This document shows positions 13,366 to 53,168 of a DNA stretch of 64,000 nucleotides, piece after piece. The first letter of the stretch is position 1; every line of letters begins with the position of its first letter. Made by a program: the position numbers and the translations under genes. The notes under the pieces were generated by a model, which was not told where the DNA came from, searched no databases, and was given only the letters and a program-made list of their open reading frames with translations. The stretch spans positions 124,001 through 188,000 of IMG/VR virus record IMGVR_UViG_3300033143_006101; one strand, written 5' to 3'.

Positions 13366-16300
13366 TTACATCTTTCTTTTATTTAGATTAGGTAACACAT
13401 TCTTTCTAACAACTATCGTTTCTCCAAAGACACCTTCTCCACTTATAGACATACCACCGAGAGGAGCCTGCCCCCATATTGCACCATGAGGATTATGCTC
13501 TGCTTGTTGCATTACTTCATACGCAGAAGCAATAGATTTTATTGTAGGTAATGAAATTTTGTGCGGTAGAATATGCTGCCCATGTACAGTCTGTCGTATA
13601 TAATCTTCATAACAAAACCAACACACACGACATACAGCATCAGCATAGTCTTTAGAACCTTGTGGTGGGTGATCCAATCTCTTTCCTTTTATTAACGTCA
13701 ATTGTTTTAACTCATGTATCAATGTTTCATAATCAGGGCATTGCTTGGGCAATTCTATTTGCCCTTGATATATAAGTTGTTTTAAAACCTCATACATTTC
13801 TAAATTAGCCCCAACTTGTTCTACATAAATACCCTCAGAAAAAAGTCTTTGTATAGACTCTACACTACTCCATCTATCATATCCAACTTTCCCTACATTA
13901 AAATTATCACATATTAATTTAATAACTTCTTCTACATTACTAAAAGATACCGTTATTCTATTCTCTGGATCCGGAGCCCATCCAGTTATAAGATCTATTA
14001 CAACTTTTAATCTTACAGATTCTTTATCTACCCCATCCTTTTCTCCTACTTTAACAGGAGATTCTTCTATATGTCCCATAGCTAACGTAAAATGGTCACG
14101 TTTCTCGCCCTGGTCCACACAAACATAATATTTATTTATCTGATCCTGTGCTAAAGGCAGTGCTTTCTTACCTATATAAATCCTAAATACTATACCTTCA
14201 TCAGTCTGCAGTTGTTCTTCGATCATTTTCTCTGAGAAAAGAACTAATGCATCTCCTTCTGTTAGTACCTTATCTATTCTTTCAGGAAATTCAAAGAAAG
14301 GATTGATTGTTGCCGGAGGTATAGCTAAATAGTCACGTCGATATGTCTCGGGATTTTGTATTCTTTCACTTTCAAAGTCTTCTCCCTCAATAAAACCACT
14401 AGGATTAGCTTCTGTTTTAGGACTCAACTCAAAAGTAGTTGCATGCATACCATATAAATTAGGTACCTTTCTATCCATCTTTTCACGCATAGCACCTACT
14501 ACTACAGACTGTGCTCCTACGTAACAGGTACCAGACATGGCTAATAGTTGCATAGTATAATCGTCTTCAAACATGGGAGAGGAAATAACTACTATCTTAC
14601 TTACTTTCTTAAGGTTAGATACTGATCTAGATACAGTGGAATAAACCGCATTAGCAGAACGAGTCTGAGACTTGGCAGCAACAGCTCCTTCTACTACATC
14701 AAAACGACTAAGCTCATCCAATACTACACAATAACTTGTCTTACCAGCCAACGCAGAAGAGTTAGAGTGCAGGGATAACATAGCCAATCGTCTTTCCGGA
14801 AATTCCACAGCTTGTTTAAGCCTTTGGAATAGTGTATGCTTTCCCTCATTGGCTTCTCTCTCTTTTAAGTACGCGAAATACTTTACCCACCAATTCTTCT
14901 TATCAATAATACTTTCTATATGAGCAAATACAGTTTCTTTAGCCTGGATTTCAGAAGAGGCTATACATTGTCCAGTTAATCTTGATGGCTCTAAACCAAA
15001 TTCTACTGCCGGATCCGGGAACTGTAACATATACTGTGTCATATATGTCATAATTACAGCTGCAATATAAGAATTGTGTGTTACTGTACCATCAGCTAAA
15101 CAAAATAAATTATCTTTATCTACTCCAATCCCCGCATATTCTCCCTCACCAATCGATTCTACTTTAATAGAAGATAAATAATTTTCCCTATTGGACTGTT
15201 TCCCATTGTGTATATACTGTTTATATTTAATCTTGCAAGGTATCTCCCATACATCTCCATATATTGAGATTCTCCATGTAGTTCCCTCATAACCTTCAAC
15301 TTGACATGTTGTTTTCTTTTTCTGTATATGAGTTCTATATCCAAGTGTATCAGCTAATCTTTTCACATCATTAGCTAATTGTTCATTAGATAATGCTATA
15401 TCATAACCATGCCTATCAGCTCGATGATGCCCATCAGTATCTATAATTCCTGCCAATACCTCCAATCTAATTTCCTTACTATTTGAAATATAACATTGGG
15501 GAATATGTTTATTACTAACAAGACTTAATTTTTTAAACTCTTCCCACAAGGGGTTTAATAACCCAGAAGTTTTACATAAACGATAATTAGCAGATTTATT
15601 ATTTCTTTTATCTGATATGGAAAGCTTTAAGTTATTCTTAGCACAATAATCTTCTAACCACTGCACTATTTCAATATCCGCTGATGTAATAATGGGTTGT
15701 TTAGAAAAACCATCTCCAAGCCAAACTCCTATCAAATAAGGATCAATAGGAACAGGTTGTTCTGAAAAAGTAATTAATCCAGCTTTATATCCTCTAAAAA
15801 AATATTTCCACTTATCCGATTTCTTTAAATAATCTTTTATAGAAATATTAACAACATCAGGCTCATTCGGATATCTTCCATTTGGTTGTCGATTAGACCT
15901 ATCATCTCTAGCAGACTGAGTTTTTTTTAGTGAAAGAATATGATATTCGTTTACTGTATAATTATCTGCTTGAGATTGATGTATCTCAAACAATTCAGAT
16001 GCCCCCCGCGAAGTTTCTAACACAGTCCGTGAAATAGAATCTGGACCCATAACCAAATCACCTACTTTAATATCTTTAGCCTTTTTTAATGTCCCATCAA
16101 ACATTAAAATATTCTGGTCAATTTGGACACATTTACCTCCACGCATACCGGCACACAGAACACCCTGATCAAACTTATTCTTATCTCCTACTTTAGAAAA
16201 TAACTCCTCTAAAAACTTTCTTTGCAGAGCTCGTAGTTTAATCCCTAAATATTCTTTGGATTCAGCATACTCAATGATGTCAGCTGTATGCTTTACTGGG

Positions 16301-16407
16301 CATTTCACTATCTTTTTAGCAAAATAAGGAGTTTCTATAGTAGAATGTGCTGTGTCTTGTGGGATATAATTAGAATTTAATAATTTATCACCTAAACCCA
16401 TAATCAC
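13366..16407 (-). CDS. terL: terminase large subunit, intein-containing
   Basis: Walker A GMRGGK|S split by intein; Walker B VVLDE; C-terminal nuclease 'CVDQG...D', 'YDRW', 'DHPPQGSKDYADA'. Confidence 0.88.
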   Translation of the reverse strand: MIMGLGDKLLNSNYIPQDTAHSTIETPYFAKKIVKCPVKHTADIIEYAESKEYLGIKLRALQRKFLEELFSKVGDKNKFDQGVLCAGMRGGKCVQIDQNILMFDGTLKKAKDIKVGDLVMGPDSISRTVLETSRGASELFEIHQSQADNYTVNEYHILSLKKTQSARDDRSNRQPNGRYPNEPDVVNISIKDYLKKSDKWKYFFRGYKAGLITFSEQPVPIDPYLIGVWLGDGFSKQPIITSADIEIVQWLEDYCAKNNLKLSISDKRNNKSANYRLCKTSGLLNPLWEEFKKLSLVSNKHIPQCYISNSKEIRLEVLAGIIDTDGHHRADRHGYDIALSNEQLANDVKRLADTLGYRTHIQKKKTTCQVEGYEGTTWRISIYGDVWEIPCKIKYKQYIHNGKQSNRENYLSSIKVESIGEGEYAGIGVDKDNLFCLADGTVTHNSYIAAVIMTYMTQYMLQFPDPAVEFGLEPSRLTGQCIASSEIQAKETVFAHIESIIDKKNWWVKYFAYLKEREANEGKHTLFQRLKQAVEFPERRLAMLSLHSNSSALAGKTSYCVVLDELSRFDVVEGAVAAKSQTRSANAVYSTVSRSVSNLKKVSKIVVISSPMFEDDYTMQLLAMSGTCYVGAQSVVVGAMREKMDRKVPNLYGMHATTFELSPKTEANPSGFIEGEDFESERIQNPETYRRDYLAIPPATINPFFEFPERIDKVLTEGDALVLFSEKMIEEQLQTDEGIVFRIYIGKKALPLAQDQINKYYVCVDQGEKRDHFTLAMGHIEESPVKVGEKDGVDKESVRLKVVIDLITGWAPDPENRITVSFSNVEEVIKLICDNFNVGKVGYDRWSSVESIQRLFSEGIYVEQVGANLEMYEVLKQLIYQGQIELPKQCPDYETLIHELKQLTLIKGKRLDHPPQGSKDYADAVCRVCWFCYEDYIRQTVHGQHILPHKISLPTIKSIASAYEVMQQAEHNPHGAIWGQAPLGGMSISGEGVFGETIVVRKNVLPNLNKRKM
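15073..16131 (-). mobile_element. intein (353 aa) with LAGLIDADG homing endonuclease
   Basis: starts CVQIDQ, ends VTHN followed by Ser; 'GVWLGDG' and 'LAGIIDTDG' blocks. Confidence 0.95.
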
Positions 16408-19801: not shown

Positions 19802-20881
19802 TTAAATGTTAAAGTCTTCTTCAAATACGCCGTCTTCTAACTCAGATAGATCTAAAATATCTTCTTTAGCTTTTTTTTCTACAAATCGTTTTTCGTCCCT
19901 TTTTAAATTATTGATTCTTGATTGTAGTACTCGTGGAAGTTTGAGCCCTGCATTAATCATAGTAACTCTAACAACATCATCTAACATAGGATCTGCAAAC
20001 ATTCCTAATCGTGATATTGCACTACCACATACTCTCTTTGTTATATCGAATATTTTCTTAGCTTCTTTAGTATATATTTTTTTCTTAGGTATATCTATGC
20101 CTATTAAGTAAGCTAAAGTAGACTTATATGTATATCCCTCAGCCAATGAAGGCTTGAATATTTTTTTAAGCAGGTCTTTATCTTCTGTTCTAAAATCAGC
20201 ATGATAAAAGTACATTGTTCTAATATCTACCATTCCATTACCATACTGCAGGACTCTCATAATCTCACCCTTATCTATGGATCCAATACCTGCCTGAGTA
20301 ACTTTCCCCTCACGCAATAATTCAAATGCAGATTTTACTTCTATTACTATATGATTATTAATCTCTTCCCACCAATCATTACCTATACCTTTACTTTGCA
20401 TGAGGTACTCATTATCTGCAAGCATAAACATGTTAATCTTTAAGTCTTTTAATTGTTTCAATGTTTTTAATGAATTATCTGCAGCAAGTATTCCTTGCAT
20501 TCGTGGAGGGAGAGTAGCAATACAACCAGTGGAAATCTTTTTTTTATTTAAATAATTTATAATGAGCGGAGCAGCACTACCTCCTGTTCCTCCTCCTAAC
20601 CCACAAATAACCAAGATTAATTTATTAGGATCTATATTAGCTTCTATAAAAGCTTCAAACTCTTTCCAATGTTTTTTTAATAAGCTTTTACCTTTAAGAG
20701 GAGAACCCCCGGTTCCACTAGTACCTAACAATAATAATTTTCTAGCATCAATAAAAGTTCCCCGAACATCTAACTCATCAGAATTTATATAATAAGTATC
20801 CACTCCTAATTTTGCAAATTTCAAGCCAATTCTAGTACCGCATTGACCACAACCAATAACTTGCAAAGCATTTTCTATCAT
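19802..20881 (-). CDS. tubulin/FtsZ-family GTPase (PhuZ/TubZ-like)
   Basis: GCGQCGTRI, GTGG, GLGGGTGGS signature, ADNE; acidic C-terminal tail. Confidence 0.9.
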   Translation of the reverse strand: MIENALQVIGCGQCGTRIGLKFAKLGVDTYYINSDELDVRGTFIDARKLLLLGTSGTGGSPLKGKSLLKKHWKEFEAFIEANIDPNKLILVICGLGGGTGGSAAPLIINYLNKKKISTGCIATLPPRMQGILAADNSLKTLKQLKDLKINMFMLADNEYLMQSKGIGNDWWEEINNHIVIEVKSAFELLREGKVTQAGIGSIDKGEIMRVLQYGNGMVDIRTMYFYHADFRTEDKDLLKKIFKPSLAEGYTYKSTLAYLIGIDIPKKKIYTKEAKKIFDITKRVCGSAISRLGMFADPMLDDVVRVTMINAGLKLPRVLQSRINNLKRDEKRFVEKKAKEDILDLSELEDGVFEEDFNI

Positions 20882-28822: not shown

Positions 28823-31402
28823 CTATTTTGTCCATTTATCCAAAACCTCCAAATCTGCCTTCAAACCTATTTCTATATCAGGTATATCTTCAATAAGACT
28901 TTTAACTAACTGAGCACCAACTATCCCAACTTCATGCTCAGGGCAATCAACTAAGATACAATCATGAACAACACCTACAATCTTTGCTAATTTATTCGTA
29001 CTATCTATCCATTTCTGTAATCTTATTAAACCAAAATTTGTAATGTCACTTGCGGTTGCTTGGATGGGCATATTTGTTGCTTGACGAAGAGCCCCTTCCC
29101 TAACTTTAGTATCAGTACTATACACCTTAGATAAATATCGACGACGACCATGTGCACTTTCTACATAACCATATTCTATAGCAAATCTTTCAACAGCCTT
29201 AAGCCACTGCTTTGCTCCACTATATAAATTAAACCAGCTGTCGATAAACTTCTGTGCTTTTGAGGTACTCTCATGTCTTTCAATAGATGTGTCCATAGGG
29301 TACCCAAGTTGTGTAGCTAAAGAAAATGCGGATAACCCGTACACAATTCCGAAGTTAATCGTTTTTGCTATTGTCCTAGCTTTCATATGCTTTTCATTAT
29401 TCTTATCAAATTGTTCATAAGAAATATGAAGAAGAGCATTACAAGCTGTTGCAGCATGAATATCATGATCAGCTTTAAATGCTTTAATCATTTCCACATC
29501 ACCAGAGAACATTGCCAATACTCTAAGCTCTGCCTGCCCTAAATCTGCAGCCAAAAGTTTATTACCAGGAGCAGGAATAATCATATTACGTATCCTATTA
29601 TCTCTTGGTACTGTTTGAAGCGGAGGATTAATACAGCTAAGTCTTCCAGTTGCAGTAGTATGTTGTAAGTAACCCGGGTATACTCTTTGAGTATTTGGAT
29701 CCATAAGATCCAAAAACCCATCTATATAAGTCGAGGTCTGTTTATTTATTTTCCTATACTCTAAGATATTTGCAAGTTCGGGATAGGTTTCGGCATAATA
29801 CTTTATTGCAGCTTCATTAAGAGAAGGATCTCCTTTAGGAGTTTTAAACTTATCACTTTTCGTAATCTTTAATTTATTAAAAACAAATTTTCTTAATTGT
29901 GGTGCAGAATTTATATCAAATTGCCCTCCATTTCTTGCATATATTAATTCCTCTATTTCTGCAGCTCTACTGTTATTCTCTTTTTTGACTTTCTCCATAT
30001 GAGCAACATCTATACGTATCCCATTTTCCTCTATACGAAGTAAAGTATTAGCTAAAGGCATTATCAGATGATAAAATAAATTATTATATGTTTTACCAAT
30101 CTCAGCAACCTGTTGTTGATAGATACGAAATGTTACATCAGAATCTAACGCAGAGTAATAAGGTACCGGTGGTAATCCACTCCTCTTTAACCTTGCCTGT
30201 TTCTTGTCTTCCACATACATTGCATAATTATCAAACTCAGTTCTTTCAATAGGTGCATCCTTTTTCTTCTTAGTCTTTTGTTTCTTTTGTGTAGCAACAA
30301 TACCTCCTTCACCCAGAATATCTTCATAACCACCAAGAGGAGTATGTGTCCAAGCCATGGTCTTTAGCTTATAAAGACCTATAACCTCTCTACCCTCATA
30401 ACTCATTGTTGTAGTGTGTTCAGCATACAGCGTATCAAAACCAAAATTATTAATAGTTAAACCAACTGCTCTTAAGAACTTCACATCAAACACACCATTA
30501 TGAAATACTTTAACAATACTTGGATGACTTAGTATTTGATTTAACAAATCAAAAAATGGAAGTATATCCTCCCATTTAATATGTACTCCTTTACCTGATT
30601 CAATACAAAAAGAAATGTGTGTGATTCTATTCTCCCTTGGATTCAATCCATCAGTTTCTATATCCATTGCTATTAAAGAAGAATCCAGTAACCGATTAAG
30701 ATATGCTTTAATTTCTATTGGATCAGACAGTGATACAGGAGTAGCTTCAAGCAATCTTGTCTTAGGTTCATATGCCAATTTCCTGGCCATTAATATATCT
30801 TCTTCAAACTGTTGATATATCAATGCATCTTGCCGATAGCCTAAATACATGGGGTGATAAGTTGTTACTATAGTACATTCTAATTCTGGATGATAGAATT
30901 GTTTACCGCGTGCAATGGTCATAGCTAAACCTAGACCAAGCATTTGATCCATAGCTGTTTTTCCTAACGTAAGTATTACTTTAGGTTTTATTTCATCGAT
31001 AAGTTTATAAGTAAAAGTACGACAGCATTTAATTTGGGTAGGAGTAGGTTTTTTATTTTTACCTTCTTTATCAGTAGGTCTGCATTTAACAGAATTAGTT
31101 ATAAAACAATCTATATTGTGTTGATTTAATTTATTTTGAAGGATACTACCAGCTTTCCCTATAAAAACATTCCCATCTTTATCTTCATTAGCTCCCGGGG
31201 CTTCACCAACAATTAATAAAGGTGCTTCTTTATTTCCACGCCCCTCAATATAGGGAGTCTTTACTCGTTTATATAACCCACATTTTTTACAGTATGCATT
31301 ACTAAACAACTCACTCAACATCTGTTCACGTACACTTAATCTAATACCTGTCGGAACAGATCTAACCGCCTTTATATCAATCATAATGCTCTCCAAAGTC
31401 AT
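28823..31402 (-). CDS. polA: family A DNA polymerase with N-terminal family-4 uracil-DNA glycosylase domain
   Basis: VGEAPGANED, NSVKCRP, TYHP (UDG4); DIETDG, FHNGVFD (exonuclease); TATGRLS, DLGQAELR, RTIAKTINFGIVYG, VHD (polymerase). Confidence 0.95.
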   Translation of the reverse strand: MTLESIMIDIKAVRSVPTGIRLSVREQMLSELFSNAYCKKCGLYKRVKTPYIEGRGNKEAPLLIVGEAPGANEDKDGNVFIGKAGSILQNKLNQHNIDCFITNSVKCRPTDKEGKNKKPTPTQIKCCRTFTYKLIDEIKPKVILTLGKTAMDQMLGLGLAMTIARGKQFYHPELECTIVTTYHPMYLGYRQDALIYQQFEEDILMARKLAYEPKTRLLEATPVSLSDPIEIKAYLNRLLDSSLIAMDIETDGLNPRENRITHISFCIESGKGVHIKWEDILPFFDLLNQILSHPSIVKVFHNGVFDVKFLRAVGLTINNFGFDTLYAEHTTTMSYEGREVIGLYKLKTMAWTHTPLGGYEDILGEGGIVATQKKQKTKKKKDAPIERTEFDNYAMYVEDKKQARLKRSGLPPVPYYSALDSDVTFRIYQQQVAEIGKTYNNLFYHLIMPLANTLLRIEENGIRIDVAHMEKVKKENNSRAAEIEELIYARNGGQFDINSAPQLRKFVFNKLKITKSDKFKTPKGDPSLNEAAIKYYAETYPELANILEYRKINKQTSTYIDGFLDLMDPNTQRVYPGYLQHTTATGRLSCINPPLQTVPRDNRIRNMIIPAPGNKLLAADLGQAELRVLAMFSGDVEMIKAFKADHDIHAATACNALLHISYEQFDKNNEKHMKARTIAKTINFGIVYGLSAFSLATQLGYPMDTSIERHESTSKAQKFIDSWFNLYSGAKQWLKAVERFAIEYGYVESAHGRRRYLSKVYSTDTKVREGALRQATNMPIQATASDITNFGLIRLQKWIDSTNKLAKIVGVVHDCILVDCPEHEVGIVGAQLVKSLIEDIPDIEIGLKADLEVLDKWTK

Positions 31403-40189: not shown

Positions 40190-40782
40190 ATCATAGCTAA
40201 AGATATCTCCAATTTTTACCATATTTTATAGAATATATAGTTTGAACCACTACATTATATTTTTTAGCTATTACACTACAACTAATTATTTTTAAATCTT
40301 TTTTAATTTGAATCACGTTTTTCTCTGTGAGTTTGACTAAAGGGTGTTTTTCTCCAATAGTATGCTTTTACTTCTTAAAATCTTATCATTAGCATTATCT
40401 TGATAAGTACCTGGATAGATATGATCTGGATTTATACATAATGAATTATCACATTTATGACAAATTATTTTATTTTGAGGAAATTTTCCAAATTTTTTCT
40501 CATAAAAATATTTTACTACTAAAAATTTTTTTCCATTCCTTTTTAAACGAGGATAGCCTCTAGTTAACGATTTTTTCTAGGAATTTTATAATAGTTTAAA
40601 GCACGTTCAATTGAACCAACACTCCTATTAAAATTTTTACTAATTTCTATATTGGTTAAATTTGTATGATTAACACAATATTTCAAATTTTCCAATTCTT
40701 GCCTAGTCCACTTCATCATCGTAATACCAGCCTTCTCTTTCTTTATTACGTCTTGTAATATATGTAACTCTTTCCCTCTCAT
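40190..40782 (-). pseudogene. degenerate HNH homing endonuclease fragments
   Basis: 'CHKCDNSLCINPDHIYPGTYQDN' readable near 40400-40470; broken frames. Confidence 0.65.
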
Positions 40783-41566
40783 ATTCTTTAGCGGTTAGCA
40801 CCATACTTGTTACATTAAATTTCCTATCTCCCCCACTTGTGCAAAACCCAGCTTCAATTGTTTGAAAAGTGGACGCATCCAAGACCGAATTATAAGTTCT
40901 CCCAGTCTCCTCCAATTGCCAATCAACAAACAATCTATTGCCAGTAATAGAATATTCCAAAACTTTACTACCTACATTTCCAAATGCTAAAGCTAATCTA
41001 CCAGGCAATGACTCTGCCCATTCTTTTACTTTCTTATCATATATAACTTTTTCATCTGCTTTACGAATTGCTTCTTTTTCTAGACTATGAAACAAGTAAA
41101 GAGTCTTGAGTTCAGGGGTCACTCCTTTCTTTTCTATGATGCTCCTATCATTATCAAATTCCGATTTTACATCATAGATAAAAGCATCCTCATAGTTTAC
41201 ACTATAGTAATATAAACAATTATCTTCCCAGAGGATTGCCTTAACAGCAGAAAATGTTGGAGCAGTATTAAAATGTAACACAGTCATCATATCAATGCCA
41301 AGTTTACGTTTACCTACATCAAAATTCTGGAAGATTAGATTATTATTATACGTATAACCTTTAATAGTTTTTGCTTTCGGAAATTCTATTTCCGGTGATA
41401 CTCCTTCAATACATCCACATTCATTACCATTAAGCTTAACTTTATACCAACCATAAATATGTGCATCACACATAGTATATTTCTTCCTGTTGTATTGAAA
41501 ACACCCATCTACAATAGGAACAATAACTTCTTTGGGTCCAACAAATTTATTAAAATCAATAGACAT
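40703..41566 (-). CDS. hypothetical protein, candidate E2-like/Cys carrier of the Ubl system
   Basis: C-terminal domain with 'IEAGFCTSGGDRKF'; function inferred from context only. Confidence 0.4.
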   Translation of the reverse strand: MSIDFNKFVGPKEVIVPIVDGCFQYNRKKYTMCDAHIYGWYKVKLNGNECGCIEGVSPEIEFPKAKTIKGYTYNNNLIFQNFDVGKRKLGIDMMTVLHFNTAPTFSAVKAILWEDNCLYYYSVNYEDAFIYDVKSEFDNDRSIIEKKGVTPELKTLYLFHSLEKEAIRKADEKVIYDKKVKEWAESLPGRLALAFGNVGSKVLEYSITGNRLFVDWQLEETGRTYNSVLDASTFQTIEAGFCTSGGDRKFNVTSMVLTAKEYERERVTYITRRNKEREGWYYDDEVD

Positions 41567-42964: not shown

Positions 42965-44617
42965 TTATTTTAATTTTATAGACTCATACCACCGTGGGAG
43001 TTCAAGAAGAGGAGTACCCATAATGTCATCAATTATAGACATTGCTCCCCTCATAGCATCCCGTACTGCTTGAGCTACTAAAGCACTTTCAGTTAATGTA
43101 TTAGGATCCACTCTACTAACAGGTATTCCTACAGCTTCGAGAGAATCAGATAGCCTTTCTCTACGAGTAGTAATTGTTCCTGGTGGAAACATTATTACCA
43201 CTGCAGCTTTAGGGCGACCAAGCCCCTTCTCATCACAGTTTTCAACTATTTGTCTGATAACACCAGTATTGTGATCTTCATCTGTAAGATAAATATCAAT
43301 TTCACAATTTAATTTACGAGCATCTTCATACCATGACAAACAATTTGTTCCATGACCACCACAATGAATACCATACAACCTTGCCATGAATGCATCCTTT
43401 TCAAATGTTTCAGGTAGATCTAACTCCCTCTTATCATCATCAAATAATCCCCAATGAAAATTCTCTTCTGGATTCTTAATGCATTCTGCTATAATAGAAC
43501 CACGTTCCTTAGCAAAGTTAATTGCATGCATCATAGAAGGGCTTGCATCTATATGAACAAACACTTTACCAAGATCACCTACAATTTCTTTTCTTTTGTC
43601 AGCACGAGCTTTCTTAAGTTCTTTACTAACATCTGCATCTACTTCAGTAGTAATTTTATCTACACGATCTAAAGCAGTCTTAGCAGTTTTAATCTTCTCT
43701 GTAAAGACTTCCATTATTTCCTTATCTTTAAGCAAACCTTCTTTATCAAAAAGTTCACGATAAATAACTGCTTGATCACCACTACATTGTTCAAGTACTG
43801 CAGCTGCAATAACTGGCGATATCTTTTTATTCAAAGCACCCAGTACACCCTGAGGTTTTAACTTCTCCTCACGGATCTTTTCTGCTATTGCAAGATCACT
43901 AAGCCCCTTGAAATTAAAGATTTCACTTTTCTCCGCAACTCTTCCGTCCTTTTGATCCCATCCAAACACAGCAACGGCTTCATCAGAAGGAGCTATATGC
44001 AAAGCCCTATACATATTCAACATAATCTTAGTAAAAGCTGCTTTTTTAATTCCTTCCAAAGCTTTTGGATTCTGTTCACGAAAACGAATATACTTCTTAC
44101 ATGCATTTTTAAGACTACGAGCGAAGTGTGTACCTTCTTTATACCTTGCACCAAGTGGCATCTTGAGATTTGCTATCGTAATCAAACGAGACACTAACTT
44201 TGGATCCATAGTTAATACAGCAGCCTGGGCAACTCTACGATAATTAGGTTTTTTATAATCACTGCCTTCTGAGAAAGGTGTACCATCTGCATCACTCAAA
44301 GAATTGATAAATGTAGATAGAACTTTTAAATCCTTTCCATCAGATTTAGTTATAGCCCAGCTGTTAAAATGAGCTAAAAAGACAGGATCTTGATCAGCAA
44401 GAGTTATAAAAGTATCAAGTATAGGTTGTAACCTTTGCTCTTGTACTTCAGGCACTTCTGTTATAGTCCCATCTGGATTACGCCGTTTTCTCATAATAGT
44501 CTGTCCATTCTGCAGGGTGTTCTTAGACCATACATGTGTACATCCACTGATAATTGTTTTATAAACATCTAAACGAGTTTCGTCGTTCAGATAAGCGAGT
44601 TGATTCTCTTGTGCCAT
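42965..44617 (-). CDS. Ro60/Rsr-like TROVE-vWA RNA-binding protein
   Basis: helical N-terminus with 'DPVFLAH', 'RSLKNA', 'RALHIAP'; C-terminal vWA MIDAS DASPS...T...TD; Y-RNA-like gene directly upstream. Confidence 0.7.
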   Translation of the reverse strand: MAQENQLAYLNDETRLDVYKTIISGCTHVWSKNTLQNGQTIMRKRRNPDGTITEVPEVQEQRLQPILDTFITLADQDPVFLAHFNSWAITKSDGKDLKVLSTFINSLSDADGTPFSEGSDYKKPNYRRVAQAAVLTMDPKLVSRLITIANLKMPLGARYKEGTHFARSLKNACKKYIRFREQNPKALEGIKKAAFTKIMLNMYRALHIAPSDEAVAVFGWDQKDGRVAEKSEIFNFKGLSDLAIAEKIREEKLKPQGVLGALNKKISPVIAAAVLEQCSGDQAVIYRELFDKEGLLKDKEIMEVFTEKIKTAKTALDRVDKITTEVDADVSKELKKARADKRKEIVGDLGKVFVHIDASPSMMHAINFAKERGSIIAECIKNPEENFHWGLFDDDKRELDLPETFEKDAFMARLYGIHCGGHGTNCLSWYEDARKLNCEIDIYLTDEDHNTGVIRQIVENCDEKGLGRPKAAVVIMFPPGTITTRRERLSDSLEAVGIPVSRVDPNTLTESALVAQAVRDAMRGAMSIIDDIMGTPLLELPRWYESIKLK

Positions 44618-44645
44618 AATAGTCTCCTCCCAAAATAATTTGTAA

Positions 44646-44780
44646 ATGGCAGTTCAAGTTGTAAAAATAGTTTTTTCAGTCCTCAAAACTGATGCTCTAC
44701 CCAACTGAGCTAATTACCGAATGGTTGGTAATGAGAGATTTGAACTCTCGGCTTGTATATTCTTACGATGGAACTGCCAT
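44646..44780 (-). ncRNA. Y RNA-like 1: bulged-C stem enclosing a circularly permuted tRNA (T arm, closed acceptor, D arm, anticodon arm)
   Basis: AUGGCAGUUC(C)A/UGAACUGCCAU; gagag-UUCAAAU-cucuc; auuacc-aaccauuc-gguaau; UAGCUCAGUUGGGUAGAGC; ucagu-uuugagg-acuga. Confidence 0.85.
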
Positions 44781-44787
44781 ATATAAA

Positions 44788-45078
44788 TCATCCTGCTTCA
44801 CTATTAGGTATTACATAGATATTGTGTCTATCTTCAGCTCTATGAATCTTATATATCCAACCAGTCCTATCATCCTTTATGTCTTTATCAAATACTTCAA
44901 CAAGCACCGGGCGAATTGTCTCAAGAATTTCTTCATCCGTAGAATCAAAAGAAAGCCCCAAATCACTAAGATCCCTTTGATAATCCTGTCTTTGAATAGG
45001 TACAATAAGCTTGTTACGAGCACCATCATCAAGAGGCGTAAGCTCTATTGTTGCAGGAACATTATTTTCAGTTGTCAT
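44788..45078 (-). CDS. putative ubiquitin-like (beta-grasp) protein
   Basis: 96 aa, beta-beta-alpha-beta-beta pattern, ends IYVIPNSEAG; near E1 and JAB genes. Confidence 0.55.
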   Translation of the reverse strand: MTTENNVPATIELTPLDDGARNKLIVPIQRQDYQRDLSDLGLSFDSTDEEILETIRPVLVEVFDKDIKDDRTGWIYKIHRAEDRHNIYVIPNSEAG

Positions 45079-45665
45079 AATATTACCTCCTTAAAATAAA
45101 TTTAGTATTCATCTTCTTCATCTTTCTTTTCTTTAGTTGTTACACCAGCTCGTCTATTTACTTCTTTTATCATTAAACTACCCCCAAGCCAATACTTTGT
45201 ATTCATTTCTTTATCCTGAAAAGAAACAAAACCTTCATTAAATTGTAAATTATCTGCATAAAATTTATCAGCTGTTGTAGCAGCATAAGGTGTAATTAAA
45301 TATCTATAAGAAAACTCTTTTAACTCTTCTTTTGCTTCATCAACAACAGGATCATTTTTTGATTCTCCATTATTATTAACAGTTTGAATAGTCTGTTTAC
45401 TACTTGCACCTGCCATATTTAATTTAGTCTCACACACCTTCAAATCGTTTTTATATCTAACAGCATCCGCATTATCTGAACTACAACTCTGTGCTCCACA
45501 AACACAACCTCCGCAACCATCAACTAAACAACCACTCACATAAAAAATTAATGAACAATAAAGAAAAGCTTTAGTATGATTTTTTTAAAATTCTTCCTTT
45601 ATACTCTTCCAAAGTATATCCCATTCAAAATCACCGTTGTATCCATCCCTACATCTAATCATAGC

Positions 45666-46703
45666 TTACTCCTTATCTTTTTTTTGAAATATTCCTTTTA
45701 TCTTATCCATTGTTTGTTGTATAATTAGCTTACCTAAAAATAATTTATTCAATAATCTAGTCGCTCTATCCTCTTCTACCATAAGATTTTTATAATTGCT
45801 ACGATTTGTACCCTCAAGTCGTTGATTCCTGTCTTTAGCATCCTTAATTATCTCCTTCATTAACTTGTTATCCATCTCAGGTATACGATCTAATTCATAT
45901 AAAGGATCTTCTGTCTTAACTACTTCTAGGAATTTATCAAGAGTCAAATCACAATGTTCATCAATCCAATCCATAATAAAATAGAGACGATCATGTAAAT
46001 ATTCTTGAACACCAAATAAAATTGGATCCTTTTCCTTAATTTTCTTCTTAGTTGTTTTTACTTCTTTCTCTAGTTTCTTTCCAGTAGCCTTTTCTTGTTC
46101 CTTTTCTTCTTTAGTTTGTACCTTACCTTTATGATCCCCATATAATATTAAATAAGTATCAAACAAATTTAATTGCTTAAAATTTTTCAATGCCTTCTGT
46201 ACTTTTGCAGGCAATACTCTCGGATAATCTTCAAGTTTATCCAACTTAACTTCAACATCACGAACATTATGCATGAATCTTTCAACTACAGCTCTATCAA
46301 TTATATATTCTATACCACAAGCTAAAATCTCTGATTCTCTAACAGTAACTGCTAATTGAAAAGCAAACTCCTCATACAATGCCTGTTGTCCACTAAACTT
46401 GGCTTGCATTACCAGTGCTTTTAACTTCTCTAGTCGTTCTTGGAGTCTGACTTGCTGAAGTTTTGTAAGTTTACTTTTTACAAATTTAAAATAAAATTTT
46501 AAAGGAGCTTTTCTACTCTTAGGATACCTGCCATTTCGAATAGCGTGTATTTCGGAATCGCTGGCACCGGATGAAGGGGCAAATGGTTCGTAAACATTAC
46601 TACCCCATTCAAGACCACTTGCCGTGTGTATTTCAATATTAATAGGTGATGTGTCTATAGTACCAAAAGTACTTATATTAGCAGTATTATATATTCTAGA
46701 CAT
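45666..46703 (-). CDS. hypothetical protein
   Basis: 345-aa ORF with AGGAGGAGG RBS; 'KDPILFG...RLYFIMDW'. Confidence 0.7.
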   Translation of the reverse strand: MSRIYNTANISTFGTIDTSPINIEIHTASGLEWGSNVYEPFAPSSGASDSEIHAIRNGRYPKSRKAPLKFYFKFVKSKLTKLQQVRLQERLEKLKALVMQAKFSGQQALYEEFAFQLAVTVRESEILACGIEYIIDRAVVERFMHNVRDVEVKLDKLEDYPRVLPAKVQKALKNFKQLNLFDTYLILYGDHKGKVQTKEEKEQEKATGKKLEKEVKTTKKKIKEKDPILFGVQEYLHDRLYFIMDWIDEHCDLTLDKFLEVVKTEDPLYELDRIPEMDNKLMKEIIKDAKDRNQRLEGTNRSNYKNLMVEEDRATRLLNKLFLGKLIIQQTMDKIKGIFQKKDKE

Positions 46704-46711
46704 GCCTCCTC

Positions 46712-47260
46712 CTATTGCATAACTGTTGTAATCAAAGACATAATAAGTTTAATTTTATCAGATTCTGACTTTTTAAGCTCATTTATCATAAAATCAATTT
46801 CTTCTTTTTCTGCAATTCGTAATAATTGTAATTTATTATCTATCTTTGAATTACCAACGCTACCATCATCAAGTATTACAATACCTTTACCATGTTTATT
46901 TTCATTAGTAGCATCTGTAATTAAACAAGGTATATTCAAATGAACTTTTATACCTGAACTAGAACTGGCTGTCTGTATTACTACAATACCTTGCTCAAAA
47001 GCTACACGAGCATCACTATCTTTTTTAGGTGGTATATTTAAATCCAAACCTTCATTCATTAATTCCCTAACCACATCTGAATAACACCCAAATTTATCAC
47101 TATAAATTATCTTTTGCATATTCCTTTCTTTCTTAGATAATTTACTTTTCTTAGGCTTATACGATCTTGGATATAAATTATTTTTCTTGCCCCAATTTAC
47201 AGTATTTTCATATAAAATATCTGCTAATGCTTTTTTTGTTGAATCTGCTGGTTTTATCAT
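46712..47260 (-). CDS. hypothetical protein
   Basis: ORF with AGGAGG RBS. Confidence 0.6.
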   Translation of the reverse strand: MIKPADSTKKALADILYENTVNWGKKNNLYPRSYKPKKSKLSKKERNMQKIIYSDKFGCYSDVVRELMNEGLDLNIPPKKDSDARVAFEQGIVVIQTASSSSGIKVHLNIPCLITDATNENKHGKGIVILDDGSVGNSKIDNKLQLLRIAEKEEIDFMINELKKSESDKIKLIMSLITTVMQ

Positions 47261-47945
47261 GGAAACTTCCTCCTTAATATTAAACATGTTATAATAATAA
47301 AAACAATTAATAACCCATAACCAATAAATGTATATAACATTGTTGGCTCAGCACTAGAAAATAAAATAAATACAATAGCTGCACCTAAAATAGAACCATA
47401 AAAAAACAATCCAATTATTTCAATTTTTCTCATAGCCATTATTGAAATCATCTTGTATCTCTCTTATTTCTTTACCTAATCCTTTCATGAAGGATCCACC
47501 ACCAGATTTAGAAATTGTAGTGCATCCTTTAGTAAGCATTGAAATTATTACAACATAGCATAATATAATTAAAATCATACCTGCTAATGCAAAACCCTAT
47601 AATTTTATTCATTTTTCTTCAATCTCCTCCACATGGTTCCATTTAACCAAAACAAGATCAAAAAATTTATCACGTTCTTCTTCTGTATGAAAAACACAGT
47701 CGATCAAATCACGAACACGACATATAGGTTTGCCCCTTTGCCTGATAGCAACATCATCACATGAAAACCATACCGCAGGGGGTTTTTCTTCCTTCGATAT
47801 GCTTGATGAGTCTAACCAAACGGAAACGCCTTTTAGAATTGATTCGGTATTAGGTAAGATCTTATCCAGATCTATAGCTCAATTAAGACATTCTACAATA
47901 TGCATCTCCAAGTAACCTCAAACTAATACAACTATTTATTTTTTA

Positions 47946-48087
47946 ACAGTAGTTCAAGTTGGTATATTTAAGCTGGATCAGTGGTAAGCCCGTATAACCC
48001 CAGGCCCCTGGGCTTTTAGTCCTTGCGAGACTACGTTGCTATAAACAACGCTTTTGTGCTTGTAAAATATACCTGTGGAACTACTGC
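47946..48087 (-). ncRNA. Y RNA-like 2: bulged-C stem enclosing a three-hairpin non-tRNA domain
   Basis: GCAGUAGUUC(C)A/UGAACUACUGU; ggUAUAUUU/AAAUAUAcc; UACAAGC motif. Confidence 0.75.
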
Positions 48088-48099
48088 AAATTTTCATTT

Positions 48100-48153
48100 C
48101 TAACTGTCCTAATAGGGAGGTCACGGAGGTCCTACAATAATTAGGACAGTTAG
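48100..48153 (-). ncRNA. hairpin RNA with 14-bp stem and two GACCUCC motifs in loop
   Basis: cuaacuguccuaau/auuaggacaguuag, located between Y2 and Y3. Confidence 0.45.
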
Positions 48154-48156
48154 AGT

Positions 48157-48232
48157 ATAGGGAGTCCAAGTTTATATTACACGTCAAGTAACCCGAAGAT
48201 AACTTGTAGGTAACATATATGAAACTCCCTAT
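48157..48232 (-). ncRNA. Y RNA-like 3: minimal 76-nt form
   Basis: AUAGGGAGUUU(C)A/UGGACUCCCUAU; UACAAG motif; AACUU 3' internal loop; abuts tRNA-Met 3' end. Confidence 0.7.
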
Positions 48233-48308
48233 TTGCAGGAGAGAGATTCGAACTCCCGTATGACCTTGGTTATGAGCCAAGCGACCTAGCCAGCTGGTCT
48301 ATCCTGCA
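48233..48308 (-). tRNA. tRNA with CAT anticodon (Met, or Ile2)
   Basis: TGCAGGA/TCCTGCA acceptor, cttgg-CTCATAA-ccaag, GTTCGAATC T-loop; CCA not encoded. Confidence 0.88.
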
Positions 48309-48596
48309 TTATTCCTTATTCCTTTTCTTCTTCCTTTTCTCTGCTTCTGAATCTGGCATTGCATCATGACATTTCTTACAATATACATCACACTTCTTAA
48401 TCTCTCTCAAAAATCTGTCAGGTGCCCAAGACCATATTCTATGATCTACTTTTTTACCAGGTTCTCTATGGTGAAGAGAAAGATTTTTTGTTGTGCCACA
48501 TCCTTTGCACTTCTTACCTTTATAAAACCTTTCCCTTCTTTTACGTAACCATTCTTTTTGATAGCTTTTTAAATCTTCCTTGTCTTTGTAGGGCAT
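48309..48596 (-). CDS. small HNH endonuclease
   Basis: CKGCG..NLSLHH...KCDVYCKKCH; inserted within the RNA cluster. Confidence 0.8.
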   Translation of the reverse strand: MPYKDKEDLKSYQKEWLRKRRERFYKGKKCKGCGTTKNLSLHHREPGKKVDHRIWSWAPDRFLREIKKCDVYCKKCHDAMPDSEAEKRKKKRNKE

Positions 48597-48603
48597 TAGT
48601 TTA

Positions 48604-48804
48604 TTAAGTCACACGAACCGCTACTGCTCGTGGTCCTTTATCTCCTTGCTCAGTATCAAATTCCACTGCATCTCCTTCATTTAATGTTTTAAATCCAGTA
48701 CCTTCAATACTACTATGATGTACAAAAATATCATTTCCATCATCATCTGTAATAAAACCAAAACCTTTTTTCTCGTTAAACCATTTTACTTTACCTTGCG
48801 ACAT
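48604..48804 (-). CDS. cspA: cold-shock domain protein
   Basis: [34 protein letters not shown]. Confidence 0.95.
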
Positions 48805-48853
48805 ATTTTTACCTCTATTGCTTAAATTCAACCCGTTGAATCCAACTGGTTAT

Positions 48854-48989
48854 TCGGGGAAGAAGGAGTTGAACCTTCGACATTCAGTTTCCAAATGCTT
48901 GTAAGATAATATTATGGGAACCTAAAAGGTTCAAGTTATACCATCTAGAAAACAACACACTGAGACTCTACCTACTGAGCTATTCCCCG
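48854..48989 (-). ncRNA. Y RNA-like 4: tRNA-Pro-like body with 63-nt Y module inserted in the anticodon loop
   Basis: CGGGGAA/UUCCCCG-A acceptor, D and T arms intact; insert 48896-48958 contains AACUUGAACC-uuuu-aGGUUCC and UACAAGC; UUUGGAA precedes the 3' anticodon strand. Confidence 0.8.
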
Positions 48990-48997
48990 TTTATTTT

Positions 48998-49128
48998 AAA
49001 GGAGTTCAAGTAATAGTTGCAATTAGTTTGCAAGTGAAAGATTTGAACTTTCGACCTAAAGTTTAATAGACTTTTGCTCTACCAACTGAGCTAATTTGCT
49101 TGTAAGCAACTATATAGGAAACTCCTTT
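48998..49128 (-). ncRNA. Y RNA-like 5: Y stem enclosing a complete unpermuted tRNA-like cloverleaf (49028-49100, anticodon ATT)
   Basis: AAAGGAGUUUCC/UGAACUCCUUU; auaguugc/gcaacuau; UAGCUCAGUUGGUAGAGC; aaagu-CUAUUAA-acuuu; gaaag-UUCAAAU-cuuuc. Confidence 0.8.
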
Positions 49129-49154
49129 AATTTTCCTTAAAAATATAAAATTAA

Positions 49155-49289
49155 TTATCCATTAACTTTACACATACTTTTCGCTACAAGTTCTCTTATT
49201 AATTCAGAAATACTTTTTGCTTCTTCAAATGCCTTTTTCCGAAGAAAAGCATGTTGTTCATCTTCAAATATAATAGTTGTTTGTTTCAT
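49155..49289 (-). CDS. ribbon-helix-helix protein, 44 aa, not in ORF track
   Basis: hand translation MKQTTIIFEDEQHAFLRKKAFEEAKSISELIRELVAKSMCKVNG. Confidence 0.7.
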   Translation of the reverse strand: MKQTTIIFEDEQHAFLRKKAFEEAKSISELIRELVAKSMCKVNG

Positions 49290-49356
49290 CTTAGCAACCC
49301 CAAATCTCTTCATCTTTTCGTCTATAGCTAATTATTTATATATATGATTATACAAC

Positions 49357-49385
49357 AATATAATCAAGATACATAATATTGTCAA
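49357..49385 (-). promoter_or_regulatory. sigma70-type promoter heading the RHH / Y RNA / cspA unit
   Basis: TTGACA-17 bp-TATATT. Confidence 0.75.
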
Positions 49386-49415
49386 CAATTTTTTTAAAAA
49401 AATTACTAAAAGTGA

Positions 49416-49457
49416 TCCTGGGTAGTATATATATATATATATATATACTACCCAGGA
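49416..49457. repeat. perfect 42-bp palindrome with (TA)11 core
   Basis: tcctgggtag-(ta)11-ctacccagga. Confidence 0.9.
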
Positions 49458-49465
49458 CAACATTT

Positions 49466-50622
49466 TTACTTGCGGTACAGCGTCAGTTGAATCACTTCGT
49501 CTTTGAATTCTACAGCTTCACCGCGTAACAGTTTGCCATTCTTACCTTCTTCTTGAACTTCCCTAATCTCAATGATTTTAAAAGGAAGTTTTTGAGTCTC
49601 TCCGAAGATCACTTTCTCTTCAAATTTACAACCTAACTCCTTACCTATGAGTTTTTTTTTATCATCTCAGGTTTAAATTCAAAGATATTAGCCTCTTCTT
49701 TCTTTAGATAACTACTACCTTCTTTGGCAACTACATCTTCCTTTACTGCATTCCAAGAAGCAGGGAGATCATACACATCTACTCCCCTTATTTTATTCTC
49801 ATGAAGAAAAATAGCACCAACCTGATTCTCGATTGGTGGGATCTTCTTCATTACTTCTTTGATAAAAGCAGTCATGTCATCTAAAGCATCCACTAAGTCA
49901 TCAGACGCAGGAATATCCTCTATGTTCTCATCTGATGACTTGGATATTCTATTACGCCCTATTGGTGGTAGTCCAGATGGTCCACATGAACCAGCTACCC
50001 CAACAGGAGCAGCGTCCACCTCATCTGAACTTGAATCCTCTGAAGAATCACATAATGTAGGCAATACTTCATTGTCCATATCACTTATATTACATGAAAA
50101 AGATCTTCGAACAGGATTATGCTTATAAGACTTGATACGATCACCTCTACCAGTCTGTGCAAGATAGACTGCATTGTGATTGCTAACAGAATCCCAAGTA
50201 CTTCCTTGGCTAGAGAGATCTACGTCGAAGGGTGCTCGTCCACTATATTTCATCTCTGCCCCTTTTTGAGTCGGTTTAGATTGATGCACACAGTGAACAT
50301 TAATGCGAGTACTCTTACCAGGCATGATAAGGTAACTATGAATAGCAACCCGTTCCTGGGCTTTACCTCTGAAGAGTTCACCTCTACTAATAAATACAGG
50401 CGTGCCCTCATTGTTCTGAACATAAAGATAGTTTACCTGTCCGGTATCTTCTACCTTAATATCCTATGCCTCAGCAAACGTAATGTATTTACGTTTCTTT
50501 TTTGACTTCCTTGTTATTGGCACGATAACGTTTAGTGATTCCTCACTCATTCTCCAAGCCTCGCCCAAGACGAATCCATTCTTCTCGCTTGAAACGGACT
50601 TGATAAATTGTTGTATTGATAT
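49466..50622 (-). pseudogene. ARPP-1/DUF6569-like protein, disrupted
   Basis: 'YITFAEA*DIKVEDTGQVNYL..N....VFI..GELFRGKAQER...INVHCV'; in-frame TAG at 50464-50466, frameshift in A9 run at ~49655, ATA at the expected start. Confidence 0.6.
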
Positions 50623-52259: not shown

Positions 52260-53168
52260 TCAAGAAACACAGGCTATCTCCTCCTCTACATCAAAACTAC
52301 TTCTATACATTTTCATGTCAGTTAAATCCAAATATTTTGAAAATGCTTCCGGATCGTAGAGAGAAACATTACAAAAATTATCTTCTGTTAGATAAGGATG
52401 AAAACCAGCTCCAAATGCAATTTTACTAATATCGCTTATCTCTGTTTTTAGTATCTTAAAAAGTTTATCAAATGCCAGGTCTTTACATACCGCCCTGCCC
52501 TGAGCTATATAAGGTAACAATACATAATACTCCGGAGTATCTCCATAAGTATTATAAACATTTAAAAAATATTCAATACTAGATTCATCAGAAATAATTA
52601 AATGGAAATTAGTATGTATTTTAGCATTCTGCAATAATGTAAATGCATTATTCCAATACTCTTCAAGATGAGGATGACAACTTATCGCTACCCCACCACA
52701 ATATAGTGATGTATAGTTCAATAAATGATCAAGTAGTGCAATAGGCCATTTAGCAAACAAACCATTGGTAGTATAATTAGGTGTTATATTAAGTTTATAA
52801 AATGCCATTAAGATTTTATTAAAATCAGGATGCATTGTTGGTTCCCCACCACCTATAGCTACCTGGAAAGGTCTTTGATTTTCATCCATCGAACCAAAAA
52901 ACTCATTTATCTTTTCCAAAGCATTTTCTGCATGCTTTCCATTCTTGTATGAACTTTGATAACACCAGGAGCAGCCACCTTCACACATATTTGTTATCTT
53001 TACATCATAAAACTCTGGATAAGGCAATTCACTTATATCTTGCTTTGGATCCATAGCTAATCTTAATGTTTTACCATTAAAGTACACCGCTTTGTAATTA
53101 CATTCTGAGAAATGCCGGGTCCTAATCATAGCATCTGTTCCTCCCATAAAATTGTCTTTTATCATCAT
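52260..53168 (-). CDS. radical SAM protein
   Basis: CEGGCSWC (CxxxCxxC), GGGEPTMHP, YTTNG. Confidence 0.92.
   Translation of the reverse strand: MMIKDNFMGGTDAMIRTRHFSECNYKAVYFNGKTLRLAMDPKQDISELPYPEFYDVKITNMCEGGCSWCYQSSYKNGKHAENALEKINEFFGSMDENQRPFQVAIGGGEPTMHPDFNKILMAFYKLNITPNYTTNGLFAKWPIALLDHLLNYTSLYCGGVAISCHPHLEEYWNNAFTLLQNAKIHTNFHLIISDESSIEYFLNVYNTYGDTPEYYVLLPYIAQGRAVCKDLAFDKLFKILKTEISDISKIAFGAGFHPYLTEDNFCNVSLYDPEAFSKYLDLTDMKMYRSSFDVEEEIACVS

Follow-up and report, generated by a model that had tools for sequence, protein, structure and literature searches.

The 64,000-nucleotide (nt) stretch of DNA analysed here, referred to as the window, covers positions 124,001–188,000 of IMGVR_UViG_3300033143_006101, an uncultivated phage contig of 252,876 bp. 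Its minus strand carries a gene for a Ro60-like protein of 550 amino acids (aa) and, no more than 4.5 kb upstream of this gene and on the same strand, five RNA elements (E1 to E5) which share one structural module. Genes for two further proteins, both conserved in related loci, lie close by. That these components belong to a real, conserved RNA–protein system is well supported, and they probably represent a phage version of the Ro60/Y RNA ribonucleoprotein (RNP), in which a very divergent Ro60-like protein is accompanied by an expanded set of Y-type RNAs. The components are as follows (related loci carry L numbers; ORF, open reading frame; MIDAS, metal-ion-dependent adhesion site).

42965–44617, minus strand: Ro60-like protein, 550 aa, predicted from profile and structure model to consist of a TROVE-like helical ring and a C-terminal vWA domain with MIDAS
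40703–41566, minus strand: partner protein, 287 aa, 44% identical to the product of the gene that immediately follows the Ro-like gene in L002
44788–45078, minus strand: small partner protein, 96 aa, 40–48% identical to the ORFs that immediately precede the Ro-like gene in L002 and L021
44643–44783, minus strand: E1, module with a circularly permuted, complete tRNA-like body (fold; member of alignment A5; covariance model R1)
47943–48090, minus strand: E2, module with a 91-nt non-tRNA cargo (fold; descriptor; R1)
48155–48234, minus strand: E3, minimal module with a short hairpin cap (fold; R1)
48854–48989, minus strand: E4, open-acceptor tRNA-like body with the module hairpin at about 48896–48946 (Rfam tRNA; fold; descriptor hairpin)
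48995–49131, minus strand: E5, complete tRNA-like body whose leader and trailer form the module (Rfam tRNA; fold; R1)

Taken alone, the 550-aa protein gives no match in Pfam, NCBIfam or PHROG and no direct sequence match in the PDB, and it has many metagenomic homologs without annotation. A family profile made from 40 homologs does reach Ro60 in the PDB (9nen_A, E = 1.2e-6), the alignment covering Ro60 residues 276–499, which correspond to the last part of the helical domain plus the vWA domain. Twelve of the 40 homologs match Pfam vWA_Ro60 (best E = 1.5e-5), and the MIDAS residues DxSxS (D357, S359, S361), together with T424 and D446, are invariant in the family. In a Foldseek search of the PDB with the AlphaFold2 model of the protein (predicted local distance difference test, pLDDT, 85), the 12 best matches are all Ro60/TROVE proteins (E 1e-8 to 2e-6, probability 1.0), among them the Ro60 of Thermus phage phiLo. 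These alignments are nearly full length (517–606 columns), with template modelling (TM) scores of 0.38–0.51; vWA-only proteins come next, at E of about 1e-3. The initial annotation of the locus had proposed a protein of the TROVE-vWA type from the letters alone, and profile, fold search and invariant MIDAS agree with this: the protein is predicted to be Ro60-like at the level of the fold without being a sequence-level member of the family.

The protein family comprises 477 clusters at 50% identity (E <= 1e-3). Almost nothing of it is found in 185,579 species genomes, the only representative being a 2-kb fragment of a metagenome-assembled genome, and tblastn against GenBank phages returned only two weak matches (22–24% identity). 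No match was found in GenBank phages in a near-identity DNA search. This Ro60-like clade, missed by sequence models, is essentially confined to uncultivated large phages, and no cultured relative is known.

The two partner proteins recur among the 90 loci with a relative of the 550-aa protein: 55 have the small partner upstream on the strand of the Ro-like gene, and 46 have the 287-aa protein downstream of it. Seven loci (L028, L034, L039, L042, L044, L045, L067) show an in-frame fusion of the small partner with the Ro-like protein, giving products of 603–651 aa, and the small partner would therefore be part of the same particle. In the fused loci examined (L034, L042, L044, L045), the Y-type RNAs are found downstream of the fused gene, not between two ORFs. 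The small partner has neither a family nor a PDB match. The 287-aa protein was modelled with a pLDDT of 90.8; it has no Pfam or PDB sequence match, and a fold search of the PDB gave no hit with E below 6e-3 (TM <= 0.17).

The shared RNA module

Each of the five elements folds alone into an outer helix, an asymmetric internal loop with 4–5 nt on each side and a second helix (helix 2) of 8–10 bp, which is 9 bp long in four of the five. Folding z-scores range from -3.5 to -5.4 (-4.6 for E2 and -4.4 for E3), and no shuffled sequence folded as well. In all cases the outer helix ends in GUUY, a C-led internal loop faces (A)ACUU-G, and helix 2 is followed by UUACAAGC. The 5' strands of the five elements read GUUC-CAUC, GUUC-CACA, GUUU-CAUA, GUUC-CCAU and GUUU-CCUA, the 3' strands (A)ACUU-GAAC or -GGAC, and UACAAG stands after helix 2 in every one. 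ACTTGRAC occurs eight times in the window against 3.6 expected, and five of the eight are the elements themselves. The helices vary in sequence between copies with their pairing preserved.

In a set of 64 distinct modules, the four pairs that border the loop hardly vary (C-G in 60 of 64; U-A in 45 or C-G in 16; U-A in 56; G-C in 44), and all four Watson-Crick pair types are used at outer-helix positions 5–10 and throughout helix 2. The 5' loop begins with C (CAUA, CACA, CCCA), the 3' loop is (A)ACUU, and UUACAAGC follows helix 2 in most members. The module resembles the Ro-binding stem of Y RNAs.

A structural descriptor was run on the window and on the 90 related loci. Its 3' anchor is ACUUG, the G of which must pair with a pyrimidine followed by C; it further requires an outer helix of at least 6 bp, a 5' loop of 3–6 nt and a helix 2 of at least 6 bp, with a bonus if ACAAG comes after helix 2. 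In the window the full signature is present in the five elements only (E2 scores 25). Ro-type loci contain 99 matches at a score of 19 or more, against about 8 expected from shuffles, and 82 at 20 or more, against about 3. Outside the window, 86 of the matches at 19 or more are on the strand of the protein and 8 on the opposite one. As control, we used 1.06 Mb of unrelated viral DNA, consisting of chance matches of a 14-base module pattern in IMG/VR: it holds no descriptor match above score 21 and no Ro-like gene, compared with 60 matches at 22 or more in Ro-type loci. The 14-base pattern gave only chance matches among the matches listed, and a 22-base pattern found only the window's own contig and one chance match in a coding region.

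An alignment of 21 elements with a permuted tRNA, from 16 loci (A5), was made with MAFFT, fitted to no structure, and folded by RNAalifold. Its consensus has 39 pairs, distributed over the outer helix (10), helix 2 (9), T arm (5), acceptor hairpin (7), D arm (3) and anticodon arm (5). Compensatory changes occur in 36 of the 39, as anticipated by the initial annotation, which had described helices that change in sequence and keep their pairing. Canonical pairs fill 94.7% of the cells, compared with 60% when partners are shuffled and 33–48% when they are slid, and the covariation score is 0.90 versus 0.25. A module-only alignment of short-cargo elements (A9) was too ragged for a model, and A5, which consists of E1 and 20 elements from other contigs, was used instead to build the covariance model R1.

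In the window R1 gives five matches at E <= 1, one for each element, and nothing else: E1 with 123.9 bits (a training member), E5 with 59.3 (E = 4e-11), E2 with 52.5 (E = 1.2e-9), E3 with 37.5 (E = 2e-6) and E4 with 25.2 (a weak partial overlap). Folds, descriptor and R1 thus agree on the five minus-strand elements first proposed for this region, with positions within 3 nt. The covariance search also extends to related phages, as had been suggested: 80 related loci contain 128 matches at E <= 1e-3, of which 126 are on the Ro strand. It might be supposed that the likeness among the elements is due to chance, or that they are decaying tRNA pseudogenes with no common function, since the region is rich in A+T and lies in a tRNA island where remnants of tRNA are expected. 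This explanation is refuted by the comparative data and has a negligible probability: the descriptor exceeds expectation by 82 matches to about 3 with nothing comparable in the control DNA, nearly all pairs show compensatory changes, and all matches of R1 except two share one strand.

Ro-like gene and module RNAs are co-located on the same strand in at least 43 loci. In at least 11, including the window, a Y-type RNA ends 18–33 nt before the Ro-like start codon. In the window this RNA is E1, which ends 26 nt before it. The ribosome-binding site of the Ro-like gene, GGGAGGAG (window 44618–44642), is only about 12–20 nt past the 3' end of E1; one may speculate, and no more, that a ring bound to E1 in the unprocessed transcript could feed back on ring translation.

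Cargo classes and the tRNA island

Cargo was classified by running Aragorn on the cargo itself, on doubled cargo and on the sequence with the module deleted, together with Rfam and direct reading. The five kinds of cargo originally described (a permuted tRNA, a tRNA, a tRNA with the module inside it, a non-tRNA domain and a minimal hairpin) were recovered by Rfam, folds and Aragorn, and the resulting five classes, A to E, recur across contigs.

In class A the tRNA lies inside the module: the leader ends with UACAA and the tRNA begins at the G of UACAAGC. Several members (L009, L014/L016, L046, L073) have an encoded CCA. E5 belongs here and scores 61.3 bits with the Rfam tRNA model, above its gathering score. 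It had been regarded as an intact tRNA; its body is indeed complete and tRNA-like, but the anticodon is AUU and only 5 of 7 acceptor pairs form (two mismatches), so that it appears as a mimic and no evident decoder.

Class B, represented by E1, carries a permuted tRNA in the order T arm, acceptor hairpin, D arm and full anticodon arm, with a 5-bp anticodon stem and a 7-nt loop, and the module exits at the variable-loop position, between anticodon arm and T arm. Aragorn recognises a tRNA in E1 only when the cargo is doubled. The acceptor loop of E1 contains ACCA, and about 8 of the 21 class B loops read NCCA right after the 3' acceptor strand. The core of R1 (positions 41–117, covering T arm, acceptor and D arm) also matches junctions between ordinary tandem tRNAs (L021 2006–4503, L034 9302–11417 and others). 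Because of these junction matches and of the NCCA loops, the published proposal that YrlA arose from dimeric pre-tRNAs gains support.

In class C the module is a capped hairpin inside an open-acceptor tRNA. In L002, L021, L087 and L007 it stands where a long variable arm would be, and class B is a circular permutation of this variable-arm type. In E4 it is the anticodon stem that runs on into the module, closed as a hairpin; E4 scores 49.0 bits with Rfam tRNA, above the gathering score, with a 68-nt insert in the anticodon loop, and is a circular permutation of the YrlA design. An intron-bearing tRNA was considered for E4 and rejected, as removal of the module leaves 26 nt where a loop has 7 and a splicing motif is absent. 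Class D, with E2, has cargo in which neither a tRNA nor a T-loop motif was found, and class E is the minimal hairpin seen in E3, which begins directly after an ordinary tRNA-Met.

Arrays reach about eight Y-type RNAs per locus (L046 111–1624, L034 6388–7647, L087 4685–6481), and tRNAs are abundant around them, with 32 calls per 100 kb in Ro-type loci versus 0.38 in control viral loci. L087 (Ga0209692_10000011) has at least seven module RNAs among ordinary tRNAs; its contig is 949 kb long and may come from a very large phage, be cellular or be mis-assembled. In L021 the RNA array is preceded by 26 ordinary tRNAs which cover all amino acids and lack the module. The chimeras of that locus repeat Arg-ACG and Lys-UUU, with the same anticodon loops and different stems. 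Anticodon loops of the tRNA-like bodies keep the shape Y-U-NNN-R-A, and several chimeras have A34 anticodons, which real decoders lack. Because of the duplicated anticodons beside a complete set of 26 tRNAs, and of the A34 anticodons, we read the RNAs as mimics rather than decoders. In two module-bearing tRNA-like bodies (L024 6375–6508 and L007 2040–2190) the anticodon is UUA and would decode UAA, a stop codon.

Ro60 holds Y RNA on its outer surface and RNA 3' ends in the central hole, and it is known to bind misfolded small RNAs. The module could be imagined as a handle for tRNA maturation: classes A and C would be real tRNA precursors, the Ro-like protein a pre-tRNA chaperone, RNase P would cut after UACAA, and the paired leader and trailer, or the inserted arm, would serve quality control, storage or ordered processing. 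The class A boundary at UACAA/G, the encoded CCA ends, Rfam tRNA scores of 49–66 bits and the fact that most class A anticodons are ordinary (Met CAU, Leu, Asp, Gly, Ile, Lys, Arg) all fit such a role, as does the capacity of Ro60 for misfolded RNAs. Moreover, YrlA of M. smegmatis is cut by RNase P and receives CCA (PMC4201824). We nevertheless consider it unlikely. Classes B, D and E (closed acceptor, non-tRNA and minimal) bear the same module and cannot decode, and the 26 ordinary tRNAs of the L021 island do without it, next to chimeras that duplicate two of their anticodons on different stems. The defective acceptor stem and AUU anticodon of E5, and the mere 3-bp acceptor stump of L087 members, also speak against precursors.

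Relation to known Y RNAs and possible functions

Ro60 proteins dock Y RNAs by means of a conserved stem, and the other half of the RNA reaches partner proteins (PMC4201824; 10.1101/312249). Bacterial YrlA RNAs are permuted tRNA mimics whose genes lie beside rsr, and the species studied each have at least two Y RNAs, at times co-transcribed with tRNA (PMC4201824; 10.1101/312249). The window shares several traits with the Rsr/YrlA/YrlB systems of S. Typhimurium and M. smegmatis (RF02553): a Ro60-type protein adjoined by several small RNAs on the same strand, which are probably cut from a common transcript, and an AACUUG on the 3' side of an asymmetric internal loop, also found in the Rfam YrlA consensus. 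In addition, E1 and its 20 relatives are permuted tRNA mimics with T arm, closed acceptor hairpin and D arm. The permuted tRNA pointed out in the initial annotation is therefore present in E1 without being a novelty of design, since a permuted tRNA beside Ro60 is the known YrlA arrangement; what differs is the joining point. In YrlA the Ro-binding stem continues the anticodon stem and the anticodon loop is absent (10.1101/312249), whereas the permuted members here keep the full anticodon arm and the module leaves at the variable-loop position; a stem that extends the anticodon stem is seen in E4 only, in permuted form. Further differences from YrlA are the motif UUACAAGC after helix 2, the larger number of RNAs per locus (up to about eight), and the additional topologies in which the tRNA sits inside the module or a module hairpin inside the tRNA.

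A search with the Rfam model of YrlA, whose kinship had been suspected from the start, matches E1 weakly (29.1 bits, E = 0.0028; the gathering score is 69) with its 3' half misaligned, and none of the other elements; in L002, L003, L021 and L046 it finds nothing at E <= 0.05. Nor did Y_RNA (RF00019), the second family proposed, match at E <= 10 in window 44400–49500.

In metazoan and Deinococcus Y RNAs the Ro-binding helix has a bulged C. The module is similar in having 5' G-U/G-Y-C followed by an unpaired C, opposite 3' ACUUG-R-A-C, in a terminal helix made by the RNA ends. It differs from them in an internal loop in place of the short continuation of the helix, in its tRNA-like cargo, and in that some of the "terminal" helices are capped and internal. 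The two-stranded site GUYC-C/ACUUGRAC looks closer to the metazoan and Deinococcus type, and its 5' strand resembles the GGUCCGA contacted by Xenopus Ro60 (PMC4201824). The YrlA 5' motif, in turn, is GNCGAAN0-1G (PMC4201824).

In Thermus phage phiLo, Ro60 has two phage RNAs and the host PNPase as binding partners (PMC12135203). As in the window, that phage has a Ro60 ring with a vWA domain and phage Y-like RNAs upstream (PMC12135203; PDB 9KOP, 9L5Y). Its two RNAs (Yrl1, Yrl2) are of stem-bulge-stem form with a CGAA motif and no tRNA bodies described, in contrast to at least five RNAs, tRNA grafts and another motif here, and the two proteins are only 13–15% identical in structural alignment. 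Phage Ro60 proteins with Y-like RNAs have otherwise been described in mycobacteriophages, CcrColossus, phage G and a few jumbo phages. Full-text literature searches returned nothing on arrays of tRNA-grafted Y RNAs or on the present Ro60-like clade. The initial impression that no locus with such permutations had been described agrees with this; the locus is not unique, however, and is a representative of a large family of uncultivated phages, dozens of which share the arrangement.

Class II tRNAs offer a parallel for class C, in which the module occupies the place of the long variable arm in a standard cloverleaf (L002, L021, L087, L007), the difference being an arm of 45–70 nt with an internal loop like that of a protein site. 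Neither splicing nor permutation-repair machinery is evident, unlike for permuted tRNA or tmRNA genes.

Several observations weigh against a Ro60/Y RNA RNP. Pfam TROVE (PF05731) was detected neither in the query nor in the 40 homologs nor in 10 distant relatives (which match vWA only), so that the phage protein, unlike bacterial Rsr, cannot be identified as TROVE by sequence, and its TM-scores to Ro60 are only about 0.5. The module lacks the GNCGAA of YrlA and the CGAA of the phiLo RNAs, and the docking mode of known Y RNAs is therefore not simply transferable. Both conserved partner proteins are without recognisable fold or family, and they take the place where RtcB/RtcA would be in the bacterial Rsr context; in two inspected neighbourhoods, no gene for these usual Ro partners or for PNPase was seen up to 10 kb away.

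The absence of GNCGAA/CGAA also bears on the question of what recognises the module. Either partner protein (the small one or that of 287 aa) or a host factor, RNase III for example, might do so, or the module might be a mere stabilising stalk; in either case the Ro link would amount to a shared operon. The synteny of the two partner proteins is as tight as that of the RNAs, and long paired leader–trailer stalks are classic RNase III substrates. We hold such alternatives to be improbable: the small partner is itself fused to the ring in seven loci, an invariant internal loop and UUACAAGC are not needed in a simple stalk, the capped hairpins inside tRNAs and the minimal form offer nothing to process, and GUYC-C/ACUUGRAC is a two-stranded site of the known Ro type. 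The version with a simple RNase III processing stalk was rejected, as it leaves capped and minimal forms and the invariant loop motifs unexplained.

For the Ro60/Y RNA reading, we infer binding between protein and module from their co-location on the same strand in at least 43 loci and from the likeness of the module to sites known to be bound by Ro. The Ro-like ring would most likely dock on the shared module (GUUY:GRAC, the unpaired C, (A)ACUU, helix 2 and UUACAAGC). The RNAs would be cut from common transcripts, and tRNA-shaped cargo may join the module via acceptor ends, variable region or anticodon stem, in either circular permutation. The ring may thus present authentic-looking tRNA elbows and anticodon loops to tRNA-binding factors, and would work with the small partner (sometimes fused to it) and the 287-aa protein, within the phage tRNA island. 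The downstream role is the weakest step; we favour one in which tRNA-directed enzymes (nucleases, repair or modification enzymes) would be tethered or baited during infection.

A more specific form of this proposal, "tRNA display", is put forward tentatively and may well be wrong. Ring, small partner and 287-aa protein would carry a set of tRNA mimics whose anticodon loops are authentic (Lys, Asn, Leu, Ser, Arg, Met and others), and these would either bait and neutralise host defence nucleases that cleave tRNA or shield and repair the phage tRNA pool. The three attachment points and both circular permutations would expose different faces of the tRNA, and the family would be a record of Y RNAs emerging from tandem tRNA genes.

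The present family constitutes a natural experiment on the purpose of the tRNA-like half of bacterial Y RNAs. What is putatively the same docking stem has been grafted at the acceptor end, in the variable region and on the anticodon stem, in both permutations, with intact and varied anticodon loops and beside complete tRNA sets. With this variety one can test what face of the tRNA is important and what partners it brings in. The family also adds a large Ro60-like clade overlooked by sequence models and two new conserved partner proteins. If the RNAs do counter defences that target tRNA, they would represent a new kind of phage counter-defence.

Genomic setting of the locus

The gene content of the window is of the type found in replication regions of jumbo phages, with DnaB, a RecA-like protein and HerA among the genes. 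Further features, of which the first three are typical of large phages, are listed here.

19802–20881: tubulin/FtsZ-like gene
28823–31402: family A DNA polymerase fused to a uracil-DNA glycosylase (UDG) domain
13366–16407: 1013-aa ORF split by an intein, which contains a LAGLIDADG endonuclease
48233–48308, minus strand: ordinary tRNA-Met (CAU), abutting E3 (Aragorn; Rfam tRNA, 55.7 bits)
49357–49385, minus strand: promoter-like site, TTGACA-17-TATATT (11/12 in a consensus scan; a consensus match only)
49415–49458: (AT)n palindrome with a 20-bp stem, just upstream of the promoter-like site, which looks like a two-way terminator

The promoter-like site precedes E5 and, judged by its consensus, could drive the RNA array. 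E3 and the adjacent tRNA-Met are probably co-transcribed. Window 48309–48831 and 49155–49313 hold genes for a cold-shock-domain protein (Pfam CSD, E = 3e-28) and for an HNH endonuclease, both between RNA genes, and a 52-aa ORF for an Arc-like repressor, which comes after the promoter-like site.

E1 is separated from E2 by a block of ORFs of 145, 345, 191, 64 and 52 aa (window 45102–47578), the second of which matches a PHROG transposase family (E = 1e-23). The block looks like an insertion, because the contiguous arrays of L002 and L021 do not have it. Just upstream of the array are an ARPP-1 domain protein (window 49645–50325, E = 8e-8) and a radical SAM protein (window 52260–53168); radical SAM genes are also present near the Ro-like gene in L214.

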